A stretch of DNA of 63,451 nt, filler included, from Choristocarpus tenellus KU-1152 (Eukaryota > Protista > Phaeophyceae): assembly GCA_964200185.2 (NCBI GenBank). It is 9 parts of 9 records of this genome, joined end to end, with 100 filler letters (N's around TTAATTAATTAA, not from the genome) between each part and the next. Parts side by side here need not be neighbours in the genome. Positions count along the whole stretch, not along the records: positions 41,940 to 53,321 come from CAXNAD020002351.1; 8 more parts are not named here. One strand, written 5' to 3'. Shown here in pieces: positions 9,655-54,327 of this stretch. The first letter of the stretch is position 1; the number at the start of each line of letters is the position of its first letter. Under the pieces are notes generated by a model, which worked only from the letters and a program-made list of their open reading frames with translations, searched no databases and was not told where the DNA came from. Position numbers and translations under genes: made by a program.

Positions 9655-9862
9655 AGTTTTTCGATTTTGATAAATTTTGGCTACTGTGTTTGTTAGCAAG
9701 TTGCACTATCCTTGCTCTGGACACACGTTTCGCAGTCGTACACATTCTGGGTAACTGTATTCACACAGAAAACCGAAAAAGGGCAAATAAACCCCGTGAG
9801 AAGCCAATCCCCGACCGGACAAACAGGGCAAAATTCTTACCCTCTTAAAGATGCTTTAACTC
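9655..9862. mobile_element. MITE family A2, partial copy
   Basis: Matches 43251-43507 (centre GTAACTGTnTTCACACAGAAAACCGAAAAAGGG); ends in TIR ...ATGCTTTAACTC. Confidence 0.75.
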
Positions 9863-10287
9863 ATGACGCAACAGACCCTGAGCTGTATCTTCAAGGAAGG
9901 GAACTCAATACCTTAGTCGGAAGGTGACTATCACAAGTATCATGTATGAAAAAACGCTCCAACACTAATTATACCCAACTTCTTGACTAGAACACATTAA
10001 TAATTACAAGAATTAAGGAAAATGCTACACTCAAGAAAAATATGGGTGGTACATCATCTCATGTTGTCCCTCTTCTATTTCATCGTCATGTGGGACTTAT
10101 CCAGAAAGAGGTTCTGTATTTCATTCTCTGTGCAACAACCACTGGTATACAAAACCACTCACTTTGTCTCACAGAACACACAATTCATACACCAATATCC
10201 ATACCAATGAGCACTTCATTACCCACTAGTACTTGTAGGACAACTCCCTAAGAAAAATCTACCCTAACCTCATGCCAGCCAAGTACA

Positions 10288-10543
10288 GGGTGCAAATATC
10301 TTAGAGGGTACGAGTTTTGCCCTGTTTGTCCGTTTGGGGCTTGACTTCCCACGGATTTTTATGTCATATTCCTACTCCGAAATGTTTCAGAGTAGGTAAT
10401 ATGTTTACATTATGAAAGGTGTGTCCGGAACAAGGATATTGACACTTCCTACCAAACACAATAGTCAAACTTACATCAAACTTGCAAAATTGGATTTTGG
10501 AACCCAAATGGACACGACTCTACCCTCCAAGTTACTTTGACTC
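10288..10543. mobile_element. MITE family A, full length, diverged
   Basis: Both TIRs and the internal CCTACTCCGAAA..TTCAGAGTAGG palindrome are present. Confidence 0.85.
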
Positions 10544-10637
10544 TCACAGTATTTGTGACGCTGGGGTATTCAAACAGACCGCCACCAACCGCACAATTTG
10601 TTAAGTGAGCACAGAATTGGCCTTCACTTACCTTCTA

Positions 10638-10708
10638 GGGTCAAAGTATCTGGGGGGGGGGGGGGGGGGGCGTCCGTTTTTCACCCTTTTTTTCATTTTC
10701 CCTTTTTT
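10638..10708. mobile_element. MITE family C terminus at contig end
   Basis: GGGTCAAAGTATCTGGGG followed by a poly-G tract. Confidence 0.7.
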
Positions 10709-10808
10709 NNNNNNNNNNNNNNNNNNNNNNNNNNNNNNNNNNNNNNNNNNNNTTAATTAATTAANNNNNNNNNNNNNNNNNNNNNNNNNNNNNNNNNNNN
10801 NNNNNNNN
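10709..10808. other. Artificial contig linker N-TTAATTAATTAA-N (also 13462-13561, 19085-19184, 22301-22400, 35291-35390, 41840-41939, 53322-53421, 57374-57473)
   Basis: The same 100-bp spacer, with stops in all six frames, occurs eight times. Confidence 0.98.
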
Positions 10809-10977
10809 TTTTAGAGTAGGTGAAATATTTATGTTATGAAAAGGTGTGTATGGAACAAGGATATTGACACTCCCTAACATACACAACAGCCAAAATTTAA
10901 TCAAAATCGCAACATTGGATTTTGCCCCAAACAGACAACAAACAGACTCGACCCTAACCTCTAAGATACTTTGATTC
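10809..10977. mobile_element. MITE family A, partial (contig start)
   Basis: One half of family A, ending CTCTAAGATACTTTGATTC. Confidence 0.8.
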
Positions 10978-11324
10978 ACATAGTGATTGTCATAAACGTA
11001 CAAGTCGATAAAAAGTGACTCTTTACGAAATAGTGGTTACCACAAACCACTTTGAAGGGATAGGCCACTTTACACGTCCGTTAGGTTTTTTTTTAATACT
11101 AAATCCACTGAAACCCGTGCTTAGGTGTTATTAAACACCAAGAACGCACTTTAGGGGTCTCACACGTTTCCAACTTTCAGAAAACCTAAGAAGTCCTTCC
11201 AACTGGTACCCACTATTTAAATAAACCCTAAATCCACTTTTTGGCATCTTTAGGGTTTAAATAAAGACTAGATAACATCAAAAAGCGGATCTATGTTATT
11301 CGCGGTTACCGGCAACTATGTTTA

Positions 11325-11978
11325 CCGTTGAACACTCAGAACACGTGCGATAGGGTTCTTCCAAAAGTAGAATGATATTCTAATCTTTACACCAACAAAT
11401 ACAGATACAAACCACATCCTTCATTGATCTAATAGTTCAAAACGTACGAAACGAAAAGGTCACAAAAATACAGACACTTTCTGTCCCGGTTCAATATGGA
11501 ATCCTATGCTGTTTGATATTCGTGTTTTTGTAACGCAATTCTCATAAAAAATGTGAATTCTGAGTTTTGAGGATCGACAGACCAGACGACATAAAACAGC
11601 ACCTCCCATCCCTCAGTCCTCATTTCAATTCATTCCCTTCAGTAGATACCGCCGTTGAACACTCAGAACACGTGCGTTAGGGTTCTTCCAAAAGTAGAAT
11701 GATATTCTAATCTTTACACCAACAAATACAGATACAAACCACATCCTTTATTGATCTAATAGTTCGAAACGTACAAAATGAAAAGGTCACAAAAATACAG
11801 ACACTCTCTGTCCCGGTTCAATATGGAATCCTATGCTGTTTGATATTCGTGTTTTTGTAACGCAATTCTCATAAAAAAATGTGAAATCTGAGTTTTGAGG
11901 ATCGACAGACCAGACGACATAAAACAGCACCTCCCATCCCTCAGTCCTCATTTCAATTCATTCCCTTCCGTGGATACC
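11325..11978 (+). repeat. Direct tandem duplication, period 327 bp
   Basis: CCGTTGAACACTCAGAACACGTGCG... starts at 11325 and again at 11652; few substitutions. Confidence 0.95.
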
Positions 11979-12185
11979 ACGCAGACCTCTTACTTATCCA
12001 TCCCCATCACACACCCCCAATCTTTGCCATGTCGAACATTCCAAGAACAACAACCCACCCGCCCGCCAATGGGAAACGTTTGGAATCCAGAACGCAGGAC
12101 CTACCCCCTACTGGCATGTCCCAGCTATTGTATGAACATTATCTGGGCTCATACAAGATGAAACTTGTTCACGTCACATGCACAG

Positions 12186-12921
12186 ATATGGTGCGTCCTT
12201 TAAGCGAGTGTGGCCTTGCGCGAAGTCTATAAAGGAGAAAGGCTGGCTGGATCAGTTTGCTCCAAGTGTTGTCATTCAGCGAGAAAGTTTAGGTAATATG
12301 GATGAGCTAAACGCCGATACTGCGCTTGCCATTGAAGGGCGTGTATTGGACAGAAACCATAGAGTAAAGGTGCTGAAGAGAGTGTTTGATCCCGAGCATG
12401 CTTTCAGCATGCGGATCTACATGGAGTTCGCGCAAACGGAAGAGAGGCTAATTTCCAACGGTGGGTGATGGACTGTTTTCGTTGTTCCATAATCACCTGA
12501 CCGTTCTGATCAACTAAGCACCGAAGTAATGTAATGTTTTCGTTGTTCCGTGATCGCCTGATGACTATTCTGATATACGAAGTTGTTGTCGAGTTTCCTT
12601 TGCTAAGTTCATTGTCAGTCAGCCCATTGTGGATATTTTCGTTGCTCATCTTTTTTATCCCTCGCGGTATTCCTGTCCACAGCAACGTGTTTCTCAAAAA
12701 ATACTTGCCGCATGTGTCCCGCGATCGCTCCCCACCTAACCCTTGTCCCGTTCGCCCACTGCACCGCCATGCTTATAGCACTCAACGACGCGACCGAGAG
12801 TGTGGTTGAGTGCACGTTATACGATAAGATATATTTTCAGGACAAGTTCCAAGAATCTATCAAGCGACAGACGAAGAAGAAAGAAATGTCACTAGGAGAG
12901 ATCCGCAGAATGTACCAAAAG
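12186..12921 (+). CDS. Putative internal exons of an unidentified gene
   Basis: 12186-12460 (cag|...|gtgggt) and 12683-12921 (cag|...|gtgaga) are phase-compatible and stop-free: YGASFKRVWP...ERLISN / ATCFSKNTCRMCP...EIRRMYQK. No family recognised. Confidence 0.45.
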
Positions 12922-13309
12922 GTGAGAGAGTTGTCGACATTGGTGGGATGGTTGCACTCTACTCCTCCTCTAGTTGGGTTACAGCTGTTGCGAGATATCC
13001 CTGTGTCGAACTATTCAACCTAAGTTGAGATAGTTATCCTGCATTTATACCCTGTCAACCAACTTATTGATCTTCGGGTGACAATGTAGGATGTATGTGT
13101 GGTTAACCACAGACGTGCAATAAAATTATTTCTTGATTGTTTTATCAACGGTATTGCCTGAACCCTCCCCCCTCCACACACACACACATATACCGCGTTG
13201 GCATGGTAATAACGATGCCTCATCCTCGCTGGCTGGGTGCATAATGCTTCCGTTTTCTGCCCATCGCAAAGGTGGGCGTTACTACCCCATCGAAATCAAC
13301 TCTACGAAA

Positions 13310-45149: not shown

Positions 45150-45180
<31 letters not shown>

Positions 45181-45235
45181 GCAGCAGCAATAGTAGTAAT
45201 AGTCGTAGTAGAAGTAGTAGTAGAAGTAGTAGTAG
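45150..45235. repeat. Imperfect (GTA)n microsatellite
   Basis: Directly visible. Confidence 0.9.
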
Positions 45236-45699: not shown

Positions 45700-46550
45700 A
45701 TCTCTTCCAATTCAACCATGTTTCTCTGGATGATTTTCTAAGATTGACTTGAGGGGGGATATTTCTCCTTTGTTTTAAACATTTCGACATAATTCAGAAA
45801 ATAACATAAATTGCTTCAGTTTCTCATAACTATTGATCTTCAAGATTTCCCCCGTCATTCCTGGAAGTCTTGATGATAGATTAACCATTTGCAGTTGCCC
45901 TGTGTGCATTGCAGTAACCTACAGCAAGCAAATAAGGAAATGTAATAGAGGGATTAAAGTAGTTGCTGGAGGAACGCCTTGCGACTAGAAAGTGAAATTA
46001 ACGTGCCTCCACACCCCCTAGAACTTGCTATCCGACCTTGGTTCTGCTTTGGTACTTTGATCAGCGTATAGATCGTGGTTGCTGTGTTGACCACTCGATC
46101 TTGGGCTGGAATGGAGGTTGTGGTAAATGTGCTGCAGGCCCCTGCGAGGAATAGGGCGCCCTTGTTGACTCCAAGAGAACTCTAGGCAAATTACTACAAG
46201 GACGTAGTACAACCAGATTCGCGGTAATCAGAATATGGGAAAAAAAAATCGATAACGAGATAAGTACTTAATCAAAGTAGAAGCTACTCTACTAAAATTA
46301 GAAAAGCAAATAGGACGTAAAAAAAACAATGCGGGTAATGCTTCCATGCATGACCGCAAGATAATTTCCTCCAAGGAGAGTGGGGATGAAGTCATGGTTG
46401 GAAGGGCAGGCTTCCCAGATGGCTTGGATTCACTTGAAGTCAGCAGCCACTAAATTGATGAGTGGGAAGAGACCAATGACGCCGCAAGTAGCCACTAAAT
46501 ACAATTTGAGAGAAGAAAGTCATGACACCTCAGCCTCTACAATTGAAGGG
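45700..46550 (-). mobile_element. Degenerate non-LTR retrotransposon RT relic
   Basis: Ordered motifs LRPICFS (~46320), SQQGRPI (~46160), DLYADQ (~46065), VNLRKS (~45740). Confidence 0.5.
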
Positions 46551-47894
46551 AACAAAGTCTTAAGCAGTACAAAAACTACGGATACACAAAAGAATATTCA
46601 AGCGTCTTGTAGGTAGACCCTTGATGTTTCAGTGGCGAGTGAAGTCACGTAGTTAGGATGACATAGTAGCCTCAATGCTCAAGGATGAAGGCAGATGATG
46701 GTGCTTGAAGAACAGTTGAGCTTACACCACTTGCTCACTCACTTCGATTATTGTTCTTAGTAGTTTGACCATGGGTATATATACTGACCACGATCATCAG
46801 AAGAGGGCGAAGTAAATATACGTTGGAAGTCTGTAAGTTCAATACACCCAAATGACCTGATCACCAAAGTCTCAACATCTCCTTCTAGTATGAAAAACAA
46901 ACTAGAGATGGTTGGCGCACATCCTACGTGAAAATGGGTACGCTGTCTCCAAGGGGGTAACAAAATGAGACATCGACACAAAACCAGCCTGTAGAGGAGG
47001 GTGGAGGGATTGAAGGTTGGAGTTGAAGCATCAGTGATGTTATTTGGAATCAGATATAGATGTCAAGCTCTTCATATATCATGGATTGTACCTTCACGCA
47101 TTGTAAAGCAATCGGTAGAATTTATAGGGTTTGCTGTTTTGAGAATCAGGTGGTTAGACGATTGATTGAGTGAAGGTACATTGCATTACCGAAGTGGTTA
47201 TGTAATCTTCATCCTCACATGTGTTGTGATGTAGGGTTGTTGAACTGGATGATCAGCTTCCACAGTCCGTTCCTTGTCACACTCAGTCATATAGAACCAT
47301 CTCCTCTAACACAGTACTATTTAATGGTTGGGAATGGGATACTTGTACTGAACAGCGCAAGAAATACATTTAATATCCACTCACAATAAGTAATGACTTG
47401 TAAAGGTAGATAGAACTGTATTCTCAAAAACGAATACATATCAATTTTATCACCATTCAGAACAGTGTTTTTCTTTGCGAATTGAACACTTTTGGGGCAC
47501 TTGTATCCAACAGCGTAGTCGCGGTCATTTTGTTATATGGACACAGTGGTGAGGTATGCATAGCGACTTCTGGTTATAAAAAGAAAGGCCGTACCCCGCT
47601 TGTTTTCCCTAACGAATTTCACGATCACCACCTCGTACCTTGTACTCATTTGTTTTGTTCAAAACATTCTTCATAGTATCCACAACATTTCACTATTGTT
47701 GGTGGATTTTTCAATAAACAACCCTCCCTATCTGTGGACATGTTCTGAATTTAATACATCAAAGGCTCAAAGTATCTTGGGGGGGAGGGTGGTGACTGTC
47801 CATTTGGGATCAATATTTTCCATGTCGCGATTTTTGGGTGATTTGGTTGCATACGTCGGATGGATAATGTAAGTGCACTGTTCCTGGTTATGTC

Positions 47895-48178
47895 CCAAAT
47901 CCAAGCTCGATAATAATTACATTGCCGACTAGCCAGGCAATGATTTCACCAAATACAATATAAGAATATGTATATATGCTAACAGATGCCGGAAGCATTG
48001 AAGCTAGTTCAGTATATGCAAGAGCAACAAATATGCATGTAAAGCCAGCGATAGCTTATGAAATAGTTACAGCTGGTCCCGCATATTGTGAAGCTACAAG
48101 ACTAGTGAGTGTAAATACACCAGTTCCGACAATAGCTCCTAGTCCCAGCAAAATCAGATCAAGTGCTGTTAGACTTGT
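47895..48178 (-). pseudogene. Fragment of a bacterial-type APC cationic amino-acid permease (Rickettsia-like)
   Basis: Intronless TSLTALDLILLGLGAIVGTGVFTLTSLVASQYAGPAVTIS*AIAGFTCIFVALAYTELASMLPASVSIYTYSYIVFGEIIAWLVGNVIIIELGFG; one in-frame TAA; truncated at both ends. Confidence 0.88.
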
Positions 48179-48179
48179 A

Positions 48180-48476
48180 TATCGTTTAACCAAGTAATAT
48201 CAAACTATTATGCACAAAATATTAAATCAATAATCAATCTTTCCTCCTCTACTACTAGCGTTTATGGAGACCATAAAGGATCATGGGTAAATGAACCAAG
48301 GTAATTCAAAATGGTCAAAAAAATAGCTTAAGGTACAAAGTAGAAGTTAACGGGCAAAAATTTGGCAATCAAAACAATATTAATACAAAAATACTTAGAT
48401 TAGCAGGAATTTATGGACGTTACCGAAATAGTCTTACAAAAATAAGAAAGAACACTGCACGTTCGATTCAGAGAAA
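48180..48476 (+). pseudogene. Fragment of a bacterial YeeZ-like NAD-dependent epimerase/atypical SDR
   Basis: NIKSIINLSSSTTSVYGDHKGSWVNE, then after a disruption RYKVEVNGQKF..KILRLAGIYGRYRNSL; hallmark S.T.VYGDH.G.WV.E and RLAGIYG motifs. Confidence 0.82.
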
Positions 48477-48801
48477 AATGGACACCCTGGTGTAGACCTC
48501 CTTTTCCCCCCAGATACTTTGGGTCAAAATATGTACAGATAAGTTTGGGAACATCAACAGAACTCTTAATGTGATCGGTATACTTGTATTTTTCTTTCCA
48601 CCCACTTTGTTATTGAGCCAATTACTTACACTATTTTATTATTATGCCCTCTGACATTTTGCAGATGTGTCAGGGAATTACTTTAGTGCTATTATTACAA
48701 TTTCAATACTATAGACTATCACTAAAATAGTAGATGTGAATTGTATTTGTGGATCTTTGTCTAACTGCCTTCAAAACTTAATGTTAACCATGTATTACAG
48801 A

Positions 48802-48874
48802 GCCGGAGTAGCTCAGTCGGTAGAGCGTACGACTTTTAATCGTATGGTCGTGGGTTCGAGCCCCACCTTCGGTG
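48802..48874 (+). tRNA. tRNA-Lys(UUU)
   Basis: Cloverleaf: acceptor GCCGGAG/CTTCGGT, D-arm GCTCAGTCGGTAGAGC, anticodon arm TACGA-CTTTTAA-TCGTA, T-loop GTTCGAGCCC; no encoded CCA; T-run at ~48908. Confidence 0.95.
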
Positions 48875-50615
48875 GAAGCTGTCCATGAAATTCTAGGAAA
48901 GCCTTCAATTTTTGGAACTCATTCGTTAAATGGACAGAGTTAATTTCGTCGATATCCAAACCCTATCAACTTCTGACACCGAATTTGTTTTCGTTGAAAA
49001 GCTTGCTTCGAATATCCAAAGTCCACGTGGTAAGCACTACTACTACGAATTGTACACCTATATACCTGTGTTTGGACTATTGTTCCATCTGTCGTTTACC
49101 ACAAAATGTGGAATCCCAAATGAGGGCGCAAGGCTTCATTATGGAGCAACTCCAATACAGTCCCACCACAATATTGTTTGATCAAGTGGAGTGGGGAGTA
49201 GTGGGATTGATGGACCCGACAATGCGTAAGAAACTACTGGGCATAAACCAAGGCTGTACAACTAGCTGTAGTCACCAGGTACTTGGCTACATATACTCTG
49301 GACCAGTACATAGCATGAGAAGTAGTGCAGCAGTATGTAGTGCCTTTAAACTCCCTCTAAGATTGGATGGCTCGCTTATGGATCGGTATAGTGCAGGCTA
49401 AAGTAAGGAAATAAACATACTATGATATCGACATGACATTATTTTTTCTCGAAATTGTGGTTTCGACAATCCAAACCCTATTTGACAAGCTTCAAAGATT
49501 TGTGTACTGAACGCCCTTGTAGGTTAGGTGTGGTCTACCAGAAACCATCGTTGGAACACACATTTGAACCTGGTCTTGACAAGGATTTCTGTAAAAAAAA
49601 ATGTATTTGACGGACCACATGGTAAGCACAACGGAAGTAACACCTACACCCTCTTGTCTGTAGCTAAACCACAAAAAGAAAGAGCTTAGTTGTTTTTTTG
49701 GTGGCAATGGCTTTTATTGTGGACAGGCGAGTGCCGTGCAAGATTTGGGGAAGTGGAGCAATGATAATAATGGGATGGCTGAGCCCTAATGTGCAAGAAG
49801 AAATCAAGGCATGTACGAGGCAGTTCAACCAAGAGCAGGTGCATGTGGTGAAACAGTTATTCATAGTCAAAAAGGAGTGGTGAGGTCTGTGCCTGAAGTG
49901 ACGGAAGTATTCATACACACCAGTAAGTAGTGCATCTCTGCTTTGTCACTTTATCCTCTTCAAAGTGACTAACAAGAAATTCTTAACTACTAATGAAAGC
50001 ACCACAGACCAGGGCCTCGCCAGGCACCATAAAATATAACAACACGCCCTCTGAGCCAACCATCCCCTCACTAATGTCTAGGAATATGATTTGACCACAG
50101 GTAGACGGAAGCGAAGGTGGGTGTCTGACAATGGTTCCAAACATCAACTACCTCGCATCTAGTGGTTGCTATTGCTACTACTACCACTACTACAAGTTGT
50201 CATCGAAGCGGTAACATCTTCTGGGTTGACCAATTCTCTCCAGTTCAAAAGTCTTCAAGAGGACTGTTGGACCTGCTAATGTCGTGACAATAGGTTCCTA
50301 GAACAGTATGTACACCTGAGTCCCCTATACCCAAACAAATGACGGTATACTTTCTACATTGAGCATATTCGTCTATACGAGAGTAAAATATACTGAGAAG
50401 CAATAATGGTGCGTTTTTTTATTATATGTATCAAGTGTTTTTTTTGTTAAAGTATTGAAAACATAAGTAGGAAACAGACACTTCACAAGAATTTATTTCA
50501 CAGTGAGAAATAATTAATGTGAGCACATTATGTAGTAAGTTTTTTTTGTTAAAATATGGAGAACAGATCTCCAAAACGTATATTTCACAAAATATTCTTT
50601 CATATACTGAGTAAT

Positions 50616-52600: not shown

Positions 52601-54327
52601 TTTCAAGGGTCTTAGATCCATTTCCACTTCCCAAACTAAACACAACACCTCCCCATTTACCTATCCTCGCCATAGAGGGAACTAGACTGGAACCCCCACC
52701 CCCAGTATTTGTTAGTTTGTTGGTACAAACAGCATTACTCCAAAGACAACAACAGTATATACATGACAAGCGTGATGCAACATGCCTCCGTTGAAGAGAG
52801 AACTACCGTTCTGAACTAATGCATCCATCCACAGCATTCCCACGTTCTATTGACAGCAATCCTGAATGTATTGATTACAGTTCCTGCATTACACCACTGG
52901 TATGATCCACAGCACCAATGACTTGAGGGAGCACACCATCCAACCCCACCACATCACAAAAAAATATAAAAAATCTTCTGGGTTGATGCCCANNNNNNNN
53001 NNGCACCCCCCACAACCCAACCCCCCATCCAAAAAAAAAATTAACCGTTATGTTGGGGTGGTCCCCCCCCCCCCCCCCCCCGGTGCCAGCTACCTACGAC
53101 ACACTTGAAGCATCAAATATGGTATTTTTTTATTTCCTCTCTTGATGTACACCTACTGCTACTATAATACCGTATACAACAGTGAAATAAAAAAATATAC
53201 TTCATACACCAAGAATTGAACTGAGACAGGGGGGAGGGGGGGGGGGGGGGGCGGGGGGCAGGGGGGAGGGGGCCACCGGCAAAAAACAAACAACACAAAA
53301 ACAAGGCCAAACGTAACCGCANNNNNNNNNNNNNNNNNNNNNNNNNNNNNNNNNNNNNNNNNNNNTTAATTAATTAANNNNNNNNNNNNNNNNNNNNNNN
53401 NNNNNNNNNNNNNNNNNNNNNGGCCAATGGTAAGGGGTATTGAAGAAAAATAAGATGGGGACATGGTGGGAGGGAAAATTATTAGGCTAGTTTTATTTTT
53501 TTAATTCACCCTTCGAAAAAAAAATTCCTGATATATTTTTAATTTTTGAGAAATATGTTAAAACTTTGTCCTTTTTTTTTTTAATGATTTTAAACTAAGG
53601 ACACAAAAGAGAGACTCACTCTGACCCTAACCCTACATTGAACAATTGATGGTACTGACGTGAAGATCAGCAACCCTTCTGTTGTGCCAAGGGGCGTTTT
53701 CATTGTACTCTTGCCTGCAGTAAGTAATTGTGTTACTTATTTAATTTGTGGAAAAAAACGGTTTTGAGGGACAAGTGTCATATCTTGGATTATTTGTATT
53801 GCAAATGCTAACCCTAACCCTAACCTTTTTTATTTAAAGCTTTTTTTGCAATATGTGCCCTATGTTTTGAAGGCCATTTTAAGCGTTAAATAAATAAAAA
53901 TTAATCCAGAAAAAAACTGAGTGAAGGTCTGTTCCTATTTTATATATATTGGAATAATCAGAATCCATTCACTAACAAACAAAAAATATTTGTTCCAAAA
54001 ATTTCCAATAGCTCAGATTTTTCTAATCCCTTTTTTTTTATTAAGATAATCCATTCCTATCTGCCCATGGTCTAGACCCCTATTAGAAAACAATAGAACC
54101 AGACTGTTCACAATTGATGGGACTGGGTTGAAAGACCCTGATATTATATATCATTTGTAGCCGAAGTCCCAGGGAGCTCGAGGTCTGGTGTTGTGTGGGG
54201 AGGCTTGTGTCCCTTGAATTATGCTTGTCGAGATAGAGTGGAATTATTGGTCTTGGGTCAATGACCTCAGGTGTGAGAAGGTAGTGGGATATAGAGAGGT
54301 TGTGCACAACCTACTTGACAACACAGT

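Follow-up and report, generated by a model that had tools for sequence, protein, structure and literature searches.

A probable relic of bacterial DNA, one half of Rickettsiaceae type, inside a resident transposon copy of the brown alga Choristocarpus tenellus

Introduction

Bacterial DNA of rickettsial origin has been described from several eukaryotic nuclear genomes. The nuclear genome of Volvox carteri carries a 9-kb non-functional rickettsial insert associated with a host transposon (PMC4324946), and inserts of the nuclear Wolbachia transfer (nuwt) type serve as ‘ghosts’ of former symbionts (PMC3798261, PMC12693587). A separate literature concerns Pack-TIRs, whose terminal inverted repeats (TIRs) enclose a copy of a parental gene that lies on a chromosome of the same genome, as a rule close by; single-copy Pack-TIRs are reported to stem mostly from transposition-independent gap filling, with microhomology, at internal fragile sites (Tan et al. 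2021, PMC8277862). Here, we describe a locus that connects the two. It lies at positions 47764-48525 of a 63,451-nucleotide stretch of the Choristocarpus tenellus KU-1152 assembly GCA_964200185.2 (the window), where a copy of a miniature inverted-repeat transposable element (MITE) is interrupted by 579 bp of AT-rich DNA made of two broken bacterial gene pieces: one from an APC amino-acid transporter (the permease), the other from a YeeZ-like oxidoreductase of the short-chain dehydrogenase/reductase (SDR) family. The explanation we favor, at a probability of roughly 0.78, is that a relic of bacterial DNA was joined into a break in a resident transposon copy and has decayed since. As a nuclear relic of Rickettsiales DNA, the event is of an already known type; its distinctive feature is the position of the filler inside a transposon.

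The Volvox carteri insert is the closest taxonomic precedent (PMC4324946). Both loci consist of non-functional Rickettsiaceae DNA in a nuclear genome and require no present-day bacterium; both are low in copy number, associated with a transposon (the host transposon Jordan adjoins or interrupts the Volvox insert) and are interpreted as a trace of past invasion (PMC4324946). The Volvox insert spans ~9 kb, retains bacterial gene order (16S, murB, ddlB, ftsQ) and is near a known endosymbiont (PMC4324946), whereas the C. tenellus insert comprises 579 bp, with two unlinked gene scraps inside the transposon copy and no close sampled donor. Likewise, Wolbachia nuwts and other relics of lateral gene transfer place Rickettsiales DNA in host chromosomes, for the most part as decaying pseudogene fragments (PMC3798261, PMC12693587); unlike nuwts, the donor here is of the Rickettsiaceae rather than the Anaplasmataceae, and one small fragment has been seen so far.

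With single-copy Pack-TIRs, the locus shares intact TIR ends, foreign cargo, an internal breakpoint, microhomology at a breakpoint and a single copy (PMC8277862). It differs from Pack-TIRs in that the cargo is exogenous and bacterial and has no parental copy; it would therefore have been ligated or copied from free DNA. Mosaic nuclear insertions of mitochondrial or plastid DNA (NUMTs and NUPTs) and break-filler DNA are built from non-contiguous fragments of intracellular genomes, in mixed orientation and with short microhomology. The insert resembles them in concatenation, mixed orientation and microhomology, and departs from them in its source, a bacterium instead of an organelle.

The interrupted element and its junctions

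Features of the locus are collected in Table 1. Positions 47764-48525 lie within non-coding eukaryotic DNA: the 11.4-kb piece that contains them has a GC content of 40.5%, and no open reading frame (ORF) in the surrounding ~11 kb carries a Pfam domain. For the read-level analysis, Logan contigs and unitigs of two public runs (X1 and X2; same organism, one study) were aligned to positions 46300-50000 (3,701 nt), where the unique flanks have a depth of 21.9 in X1 and 3-7 in X2.

Table 1. Coordinates of the interrupted element, its insert and their junctions, in positions of the window
Feature	Positions	Strand	Basis
Left arm, interrupted MITE-like TIR element	47764-47900	.	contig depth and joins in other copies
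Left terminal inverted repeat	47768-47805	.	gapped alignment against shuffles
AAAT junction microhomology, left copy	47897-47900	.	read in sequence; donor-permease homology continues through to 47896
Pseudogenised Rickettsiaceae-type APC amino-acid transporter fragment, residues 24-118 of 468	47897-48180	-	profiles, genome loci, tree
In-frame TAA stop replacing a Tyr (TAC) near-invariant in Rickettsiaceae	48056-48058	-	alignment; TAC in L001
Join between gene pieces, very AT-rich; right part may be SDR no longer alignable	48181-48247	.	permease identity ends at 48180, SDR match starts at 48248
Frameshifted YeeZ-like SDR-family oxidoreductase fragment, profile positions 101-174 of 284	48248-48477	+	profile match
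AAAT junction microhomology, right copy	48476-48479	.	read in sequence
Right arm of TIR element (right TIR 48476-48521)	48480-48525	.	inverted-repeat alignment and reads

The intact element measures 183 bp (47764-47900 plus 48480-48525). Its TIRs pair without gaps over 26 nt at 81% identity (47768-47793 against 48496-48521), and the gapped alignment of 47768-47805 with 48476-48521 scores 33, compared to 13.8 +/- 2.5 and a maximum of 24 in 500 shuffles. The family is extremely abundant in the reads: the summed contig depth reaches 782,033 at 47788-47911, versus ~22 in the unique flanks, and the most abundant part of the left arm is the core at 47816-47900. Altogether, 12,940 X1 contigs align to the 3.7-kb stretch, mostly 90-99% alike, a count that includes a second repeat family and a tRNA gene. 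Short, bounded by inverted repeats and present in high copy number, with thousands of diverged copies in the reads, the element has the hallmarks of a MITE.

Many of these contigs pass from 47879-47896 directly into 48475-48477, reading ...CC(C)AAATGGACACC with small variants, and are therefore other copies of the family without the insert. They bear out the first-pass annotation of this DNA, made from the sequence alone, which had described a MITE split at CCAAAT^GGACACC. That annotation was also right about the survival of both TIRs, the AAAT present at both junctions and the flanks of the element, CAAA/AAAA, in which a single copy gives no convincing target-site duplication. Its ~575 bp of AT-rich cargo stands as well, with corrected limits: the insert measures 579 bp, the permease piece covers 47897-48180 and the firm SDR match 48248-48477. 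Translation of this block yields the peptide strings cited in that annotation. Because AAAT is found at both 47897-47900 and 48476-48479, the insert can be delimited as 47897-48475 or, equally, as 47901-48479. The breakpoint is internal, 137 bp into the element and at the inner edge of the right TIR, and does not correspond to an excision end.

The junctions are real, and the insert is present in a single copy. Reads across both junctions had been proposed as a check, and one unitig from each run provides them: record 7 of X1 (802 nt, 47856-48657, depth 22.1) and record 14 of X2 (803 nt, 47855-48657, depth 6.87) cross both junctions with 0 differences. Depth across 47912-48407 is 22-28 in X1 and 6.9-8.7 in X2, with no variant letters. 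The bridging unitig is unbranched, the 31-mers of the insert occurring in no other read context. A unitig of 31-mers could not be produced by a 4-base overlap and would break if the insert 31-mers recurred elsewhere; found at flank depth, the bridging unitigs thus place the insert next to the repeat in the reads themselves, at host copy number. The reads of X1 and X2 contain no second version of the insert at 90% identity or above and, by that measure, show no sign of a near-identical live donor; read depth indicates no parental copy of the cargo in the genome, and a search of other samples turned up no short predicted protein with the exact sequence of the permease fragment.

Compared with the definition of Pack-TIRs, the locus has the structure, namely, two intact TIRs with non-transposon sequence between them. 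Its cargo does not come from a parental locus of the same genome, as judged by single-copy depth and bacterial origin, and there is no sign of mobilization (multiple copies at new target sites), given the flank-level depth and the unbranched unitig.

The permease half: identity and donor

The NCBIfam models BcaP and TIGR00909 match the permease fragment at profile positions 23-61 and 64-115 of 460 (E 2e-11 and 1.7e-15). These bacterial-type models score 56-57 bits, versus 30 bits for TIGR00906, the eukaryote-type model of cationic amino-acid transporters (CAT). The fragment is broken and represents only 20% of the transporter; a full-length relative from the rickettsial locus L004 scores 488 bits.

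A genome scan with one genome per bacterial or archaeal species returned 80 loci. The best ~40 of the 80 belong to Rickettsiaceae or Rickettsiales, at 65-81% amino-acid identity, and include many metagenome-assembled genomes (MAGs), Ca. Megaira polyxenophila (spelled “Megaera” in the database record), Ca. Megaira venefica, Tisiphia, Rickettsia and Orientia; sphingomonads (60-68%) and Bacilli (~50-59%) come next. Amino-acid identity is 79.8% with L001 and L004, where both pieces of the fragment fall on one gene, which in L004 is a 468-aa ORF immediately downstream of mnmA. At the nucleotide level, the alignment is gapless, with 76-77% identity over 276-277 nt (L003, L004) and 75.7% with L001, and identity drops to background level outside 47896-48180.

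A wider HMMER search covered 1.84 billion representative proteins from all domains of life. Among the matches listed, the best (75%) is a gene model on a contig of the rotifer Rotaria sordida, full-length representatives (400-560 aa) are ~50-59% identical and no eukaryotic amino-acid transporter comes closer. Best matches among eukaryotic CAT genes had been named at the outset as what would overturn a bacterial origin, and the matches listed hold none that is closer.

On the Rotaria contig (CAJOBE010004585.1; L082), positions 9837-12950 are 84-88% identical in DNA to the mnmA/APC-permease region of a Tisiphia endosymbiont (L022), and an intron-bearing gene model of 214 aa (P0151) has been called across them; synteny with Tisiphia does not extend into the left 9.8 kb. 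Either the rotifer acquired this stretch recently by transfer, or host and symbiont sequence were joined into a chimera.

In a maximum-likelihood tree of 95 aligned residues, the fragment falls in a 43-row clade with 100/97 support, whose other members are all Rickettsiaceae or else MAG contigs that are unlabelled or mis-binned. Within this clade, it groups with uncultured Rickettsiaceae (L001-L006, L010 and L013; 81/86) and not with the Megaira polyxenophila or Tisiphia/Rickettsia groups. Judged from profiles, loci and tree, the permease donor was certainly a member of the Rickettsiaceae or of their immediate sister lineage. The first-pass annotation had recognized the Rickettsiaceae type of the permease, which the identities of the best ~40 loci, the 75-77% nucleotide identity and the tree all confirm. 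It had mentioned Ca. Megaira as an example of Rickettsiales endosymbionts in algae; the permease of Ca. Megaira polyxenophila, at 76% amino-acid and 72% nucleotide identity, is more distant than those of the uncultured Rickettsiaceae MAGs.

One further member of the clade, L027, lies on a contig binned as a Janthinobacterium lividum MAG, and its permease is 73% identical to the fragment. The contig is probably mis-binned.

The permease half: decay

The two permease pieces lie on the same gene exactly one codon apart, and the stop between them is therefore an in-frame substitution; relative to its homologs, the piece contains no indel. Its third-position GC content (GC3) is 21%, compared to 16-39% in relatives. 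Private changes affect 12 of the 169 first and second codon positions that are conserved in at least seven of the eight closest relatives, whereas the same measure gives 1-5 in six of those eight, 6 in L013 and 10 in L005. Of 40 residues that hardly vary across the clade, three are altered (G25S, Y40stop and G65V), and the terminal branch of the fragment has a length of 0.26, versus a median of 0.04. As read from these alignments, the sequence has been under relaxed constraint since its transfer. That transfer is unlikely to be very old, given the modest number of changes and the lack of indels.

The SDR half

The right half of the insert was more difficult to place. A metagenome scan yielded a single SDR relative, L081, at 38% identity, and through it a profile was obtained of 120 alphaproteobacterial proteins named ‘SDR family oxidoreductase / nucleoside-diphosphate-sugar epimerase’. 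Two stretches match this profile: STTSVYGDHKGSWVNE at profile positions 101-116 (21.9 bits) and ...ILRLAGIYG...TARSIQRK at positions 128-174 (30.8 bits). The matches are collinear on the plus strand, no other frame scores, and the SDR motifs STTSVYGDHxGxWVxE and RLAGIYG are present. A frameshift lies between 48296 and 48324, and the fragment amounts to ~30% of a 284-residue protein. Together with the stop at 48056-48058 and the derivation from two unlinked genes, this agrees with the earlier description of the cargo as two truncated, pseudogenised pieces.

Other searches added little. Pfam on the SDR piece gave only 3Beta_HSD (E 0.004), the SDR fragments stayed below the thresholds of the curated Pfam and NCBIfam models, and the fragment had no match in the PDB and nothing recognizable in the ESM Atlas. 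A profile of L081 plus the fragments found only Rhodobacterales-like proteins among the matches listed, and tblastn of the fragment on plasmids gave Sinorhizobium-type matches at 37%. GC3 is 23-25%, versus 60% in the free-living homolog L081; with so little post-transfer decay, this composition implies an AT-rich SDR donor.

Composite make-up and proposed origin

In all 80 loci, the 10 kb on either side of the permease gene are free of SDR genes. Since the two genes are unlinked there and both are cut short at the join, the insert must have been put together from two or more fragments that were not linked. GC content at the join (48176-48217) is 26%. A contiguous pair of divergent genes in the donor was considered and rejected: upstream, the permease adjoins mnmA, and each gene is cut off where the two pieces meet.

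We infer a common donor for both halves, a repair mechanism for their arrival and an earlier infection of the host’s germ line or cell line, in the following order. An intracellular Rickettsiaceae bacterium would have lysed, releasing its DNA into the nucleus, where two unlinked fragments of its AT-rich genome would have been concatenated end to end. The concatenate would then have sealed a double-strand break in an already resident copy of the 183-bp TIR element, by end joining or gap filling, helped by the 4-bp AAAT microhomology at one junction; NUMTs, NUPTs, Wolbachia nuwts and single-copy Pack-TIRs originate through these routes too. The transposon would thus be a landing site, with no active role in capture. 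After insertion, the DNA would have decayed neutrally through a stop, a frameshift and changes at invariant residues, remaining single-copy and without function. The idea of repair filler goes back to the first-pass annotation, and both the junction microhomology and the internal breakpoint fit it.

Several points weigh against this explanation. Among the matches listed, the best relatives of the SDR half are 37-38% identical and come from free-living alphaproteobacteria, with no tie to Rickettsiaceae; the original assignment of the whole cargo to a Rickettsia-like bacterium is supported for the permease half and no more than possible for the SDR half. By an approximately unbiased (AU) test, the permease fragment could also branch immediately outside the 42 sampled rows (p 0.33), so that its placement within the Rickettsiaceae could be that of a sister of the sampled Rickettsiaceae. 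For this reason, nesting inside crown Rickettsiaceae was dropped as a firm claim, and the 100/97 clade alone is claimed. The nearest sampled genomes, uncultured Rickettsiaceae MAGs, still differ by ~25% at the nucleotide level; with no sampled genome closer than ~75%, the transfer must either be old or come from a lineage that has yet to be sampled. The 4-base AAAT microhomology would occur by chance at a frequency of roughly 1 in 100 to 1 in 250. X1 and X2 possibly include the sample underlying the assembly, and they serve as evidence on the junctions and not as an independent population sample. Finally, a route via organelle DNA is possible, since a fern mitogenome is reported to contain rickettsial DNA (PMC10027690).

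The last point leads to the alternative that the transfer was indirect, with a larger nuclear or organellar insert arriving first, or with the halves coming from two bacteria, and only this scrap surviving. Large rickettsial inserts are known, as illustrated by the 9 kb in Volvox carteri (PMC4324946), and the fern mitogenome offers an organellar counterpart; the lack of linkage between the two genes in all sampled genomes and the low identity of the SDR matches also agree with such a history. Depth reveals no second copy of the insert, however, the 11.4-kb piece holds no further match to the available Rickettsiaceae loci and both halves share extremely AT-rich third positions, most simply explained by one donor, which together make an indirect transfer improbable. 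Still less probable is active capture by a Pack-type MITE during transposition, through gap repair after excision or through template switching, yielding an element able to carry its cargo onward. This is close to the Pack-type element spreading bacterial DNA that was originally envisaged, and it draws on the two intact TIRs, on a very abundant family with near-identical copies (1,607 contigs at 99% or above, a count that spans the whole aligned stretch) and on the TIR-cargo-TIR arrangement with microhomology, which formally qualifies as a Pack-TIR (PMC8277862). Spreading fails on copy number, because the insert is single-copy, at a depth of 22.1 versus 21.9 in the flanks; depth at 47912-48407 equals that of the unique flanks, and the bridging unitig is unbranched. 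The breakpoint is not an excision end, most single-copy Pack-TIRs arise without transposition (PMC8277862) and template switching onto a chromosomal donor is excluded by the missing parental copy.

Two further alternatives would deny a bacterial relic altogether. Contamination or a chimeric assembly, in which reads of a live Rickettsiales symbiont were misjoined to a host repeat, would be a natural suspicion: projects that sequence eukaryotes often pick up Rickettsiaceae as cobionts, MAGs of just that kind supply several of the best loci and high-copy repeats are classic sites of misassembly. We nevertheless hold it to be hardly credible. Independent Logan unitigs of two runs span MITE, insert and MITE at host depth with no difference from the assembly, in agreement with the earlier judgment against simple contamination; the genes are truncated, fused head to head and broken by a frameshift as well as a stop; and the closest genome sampled is ~25% different at the nucleotide level, with no intact second version at 90% likeness or above. 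The other alternative, ordinary Pack-MULE or Pack-TIR capture of the host’s own gene fragments, has in its favor that eukaryotes possess APC/CAT transporters and SDR enzymes and that host-fragment capture is the usual case among Pack-TIRs (PMC8277862). Its probability is next to negligible given ~80% amino-acid and 75-77% nucleotide identity to Rickettsiaceae, versus ~50% for longer representative proteins of unassigned origin, a eukaryote-type CAT model that scores about half the bacterial one, GC3 of 21-25% within a host region of 40.5% GC and a depth that shows no parental copy.

Significance

If the insert is a relic of bacterial DNA joined into a broken transposon copy, it constitutes a decay-dated, contamination-proof marker of a past infection by the Rickettsia family, in the germ line, or in the cell line itself if the host was unicellular. 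No sampled genome closely represents the infecting bacterium. The locus also provides a natural example of exogenous bacterial DNA serving as repair filler in a transposon, and connects the literature on endosymbiont inserts with that on Pack-TIRs. A dead single-copy fragment is expected to have no effect on the host.

A bolder extension is that this insert is one scrap of a wider invasion, the host lineage having carried, or carrying even now, an unsampled Rickettsiaceae lineage with its DNA scattered genome-wide, preferentially at fragile sites in the hyper-abundant MITE family. We regard this as tentative and rather doubtful; in a stronger version, loaded MITEs may have moved some of the scraps. 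If a wider invasion did take place, it would have left fossils scattered through the genome that could reveal how old the symbiont lineage is and which hosts it infected. The value of the present locus would grow if many such fragments existed across the genome, or if any mobilized copy did.

Neighboring features

A tRNA-Lys(UUU) gene lies 280 bp downstream of the element, at 48802-48874 (ARAGORN and Rfam, 71 bits), and is the sole Rfam match across the piece. Its summed depth of ~2,500 in X1 reflects numerous near-identical copies or a tRNA-derived repeat, and it is the sole stretch matched by reads of the study’s other organism (90-95% alike). Directly to the right of the element, positions 48532-48779 form a second, unrelated high-copy repeat, with a summed contig depth of 119,000-148,000, versus 22 in unique sequence. 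Many joints in this repeat go back from 48675-48677 to 48632-48640, and its copies therefore differ by a short internal duplication. Elsewhere in the piece are a (GTA)27 microsatellite at 45154-45235, an assembly gap (20 N) at ~51.2 kb and a 44-nt poly-G run at the piece end (53229-53272).

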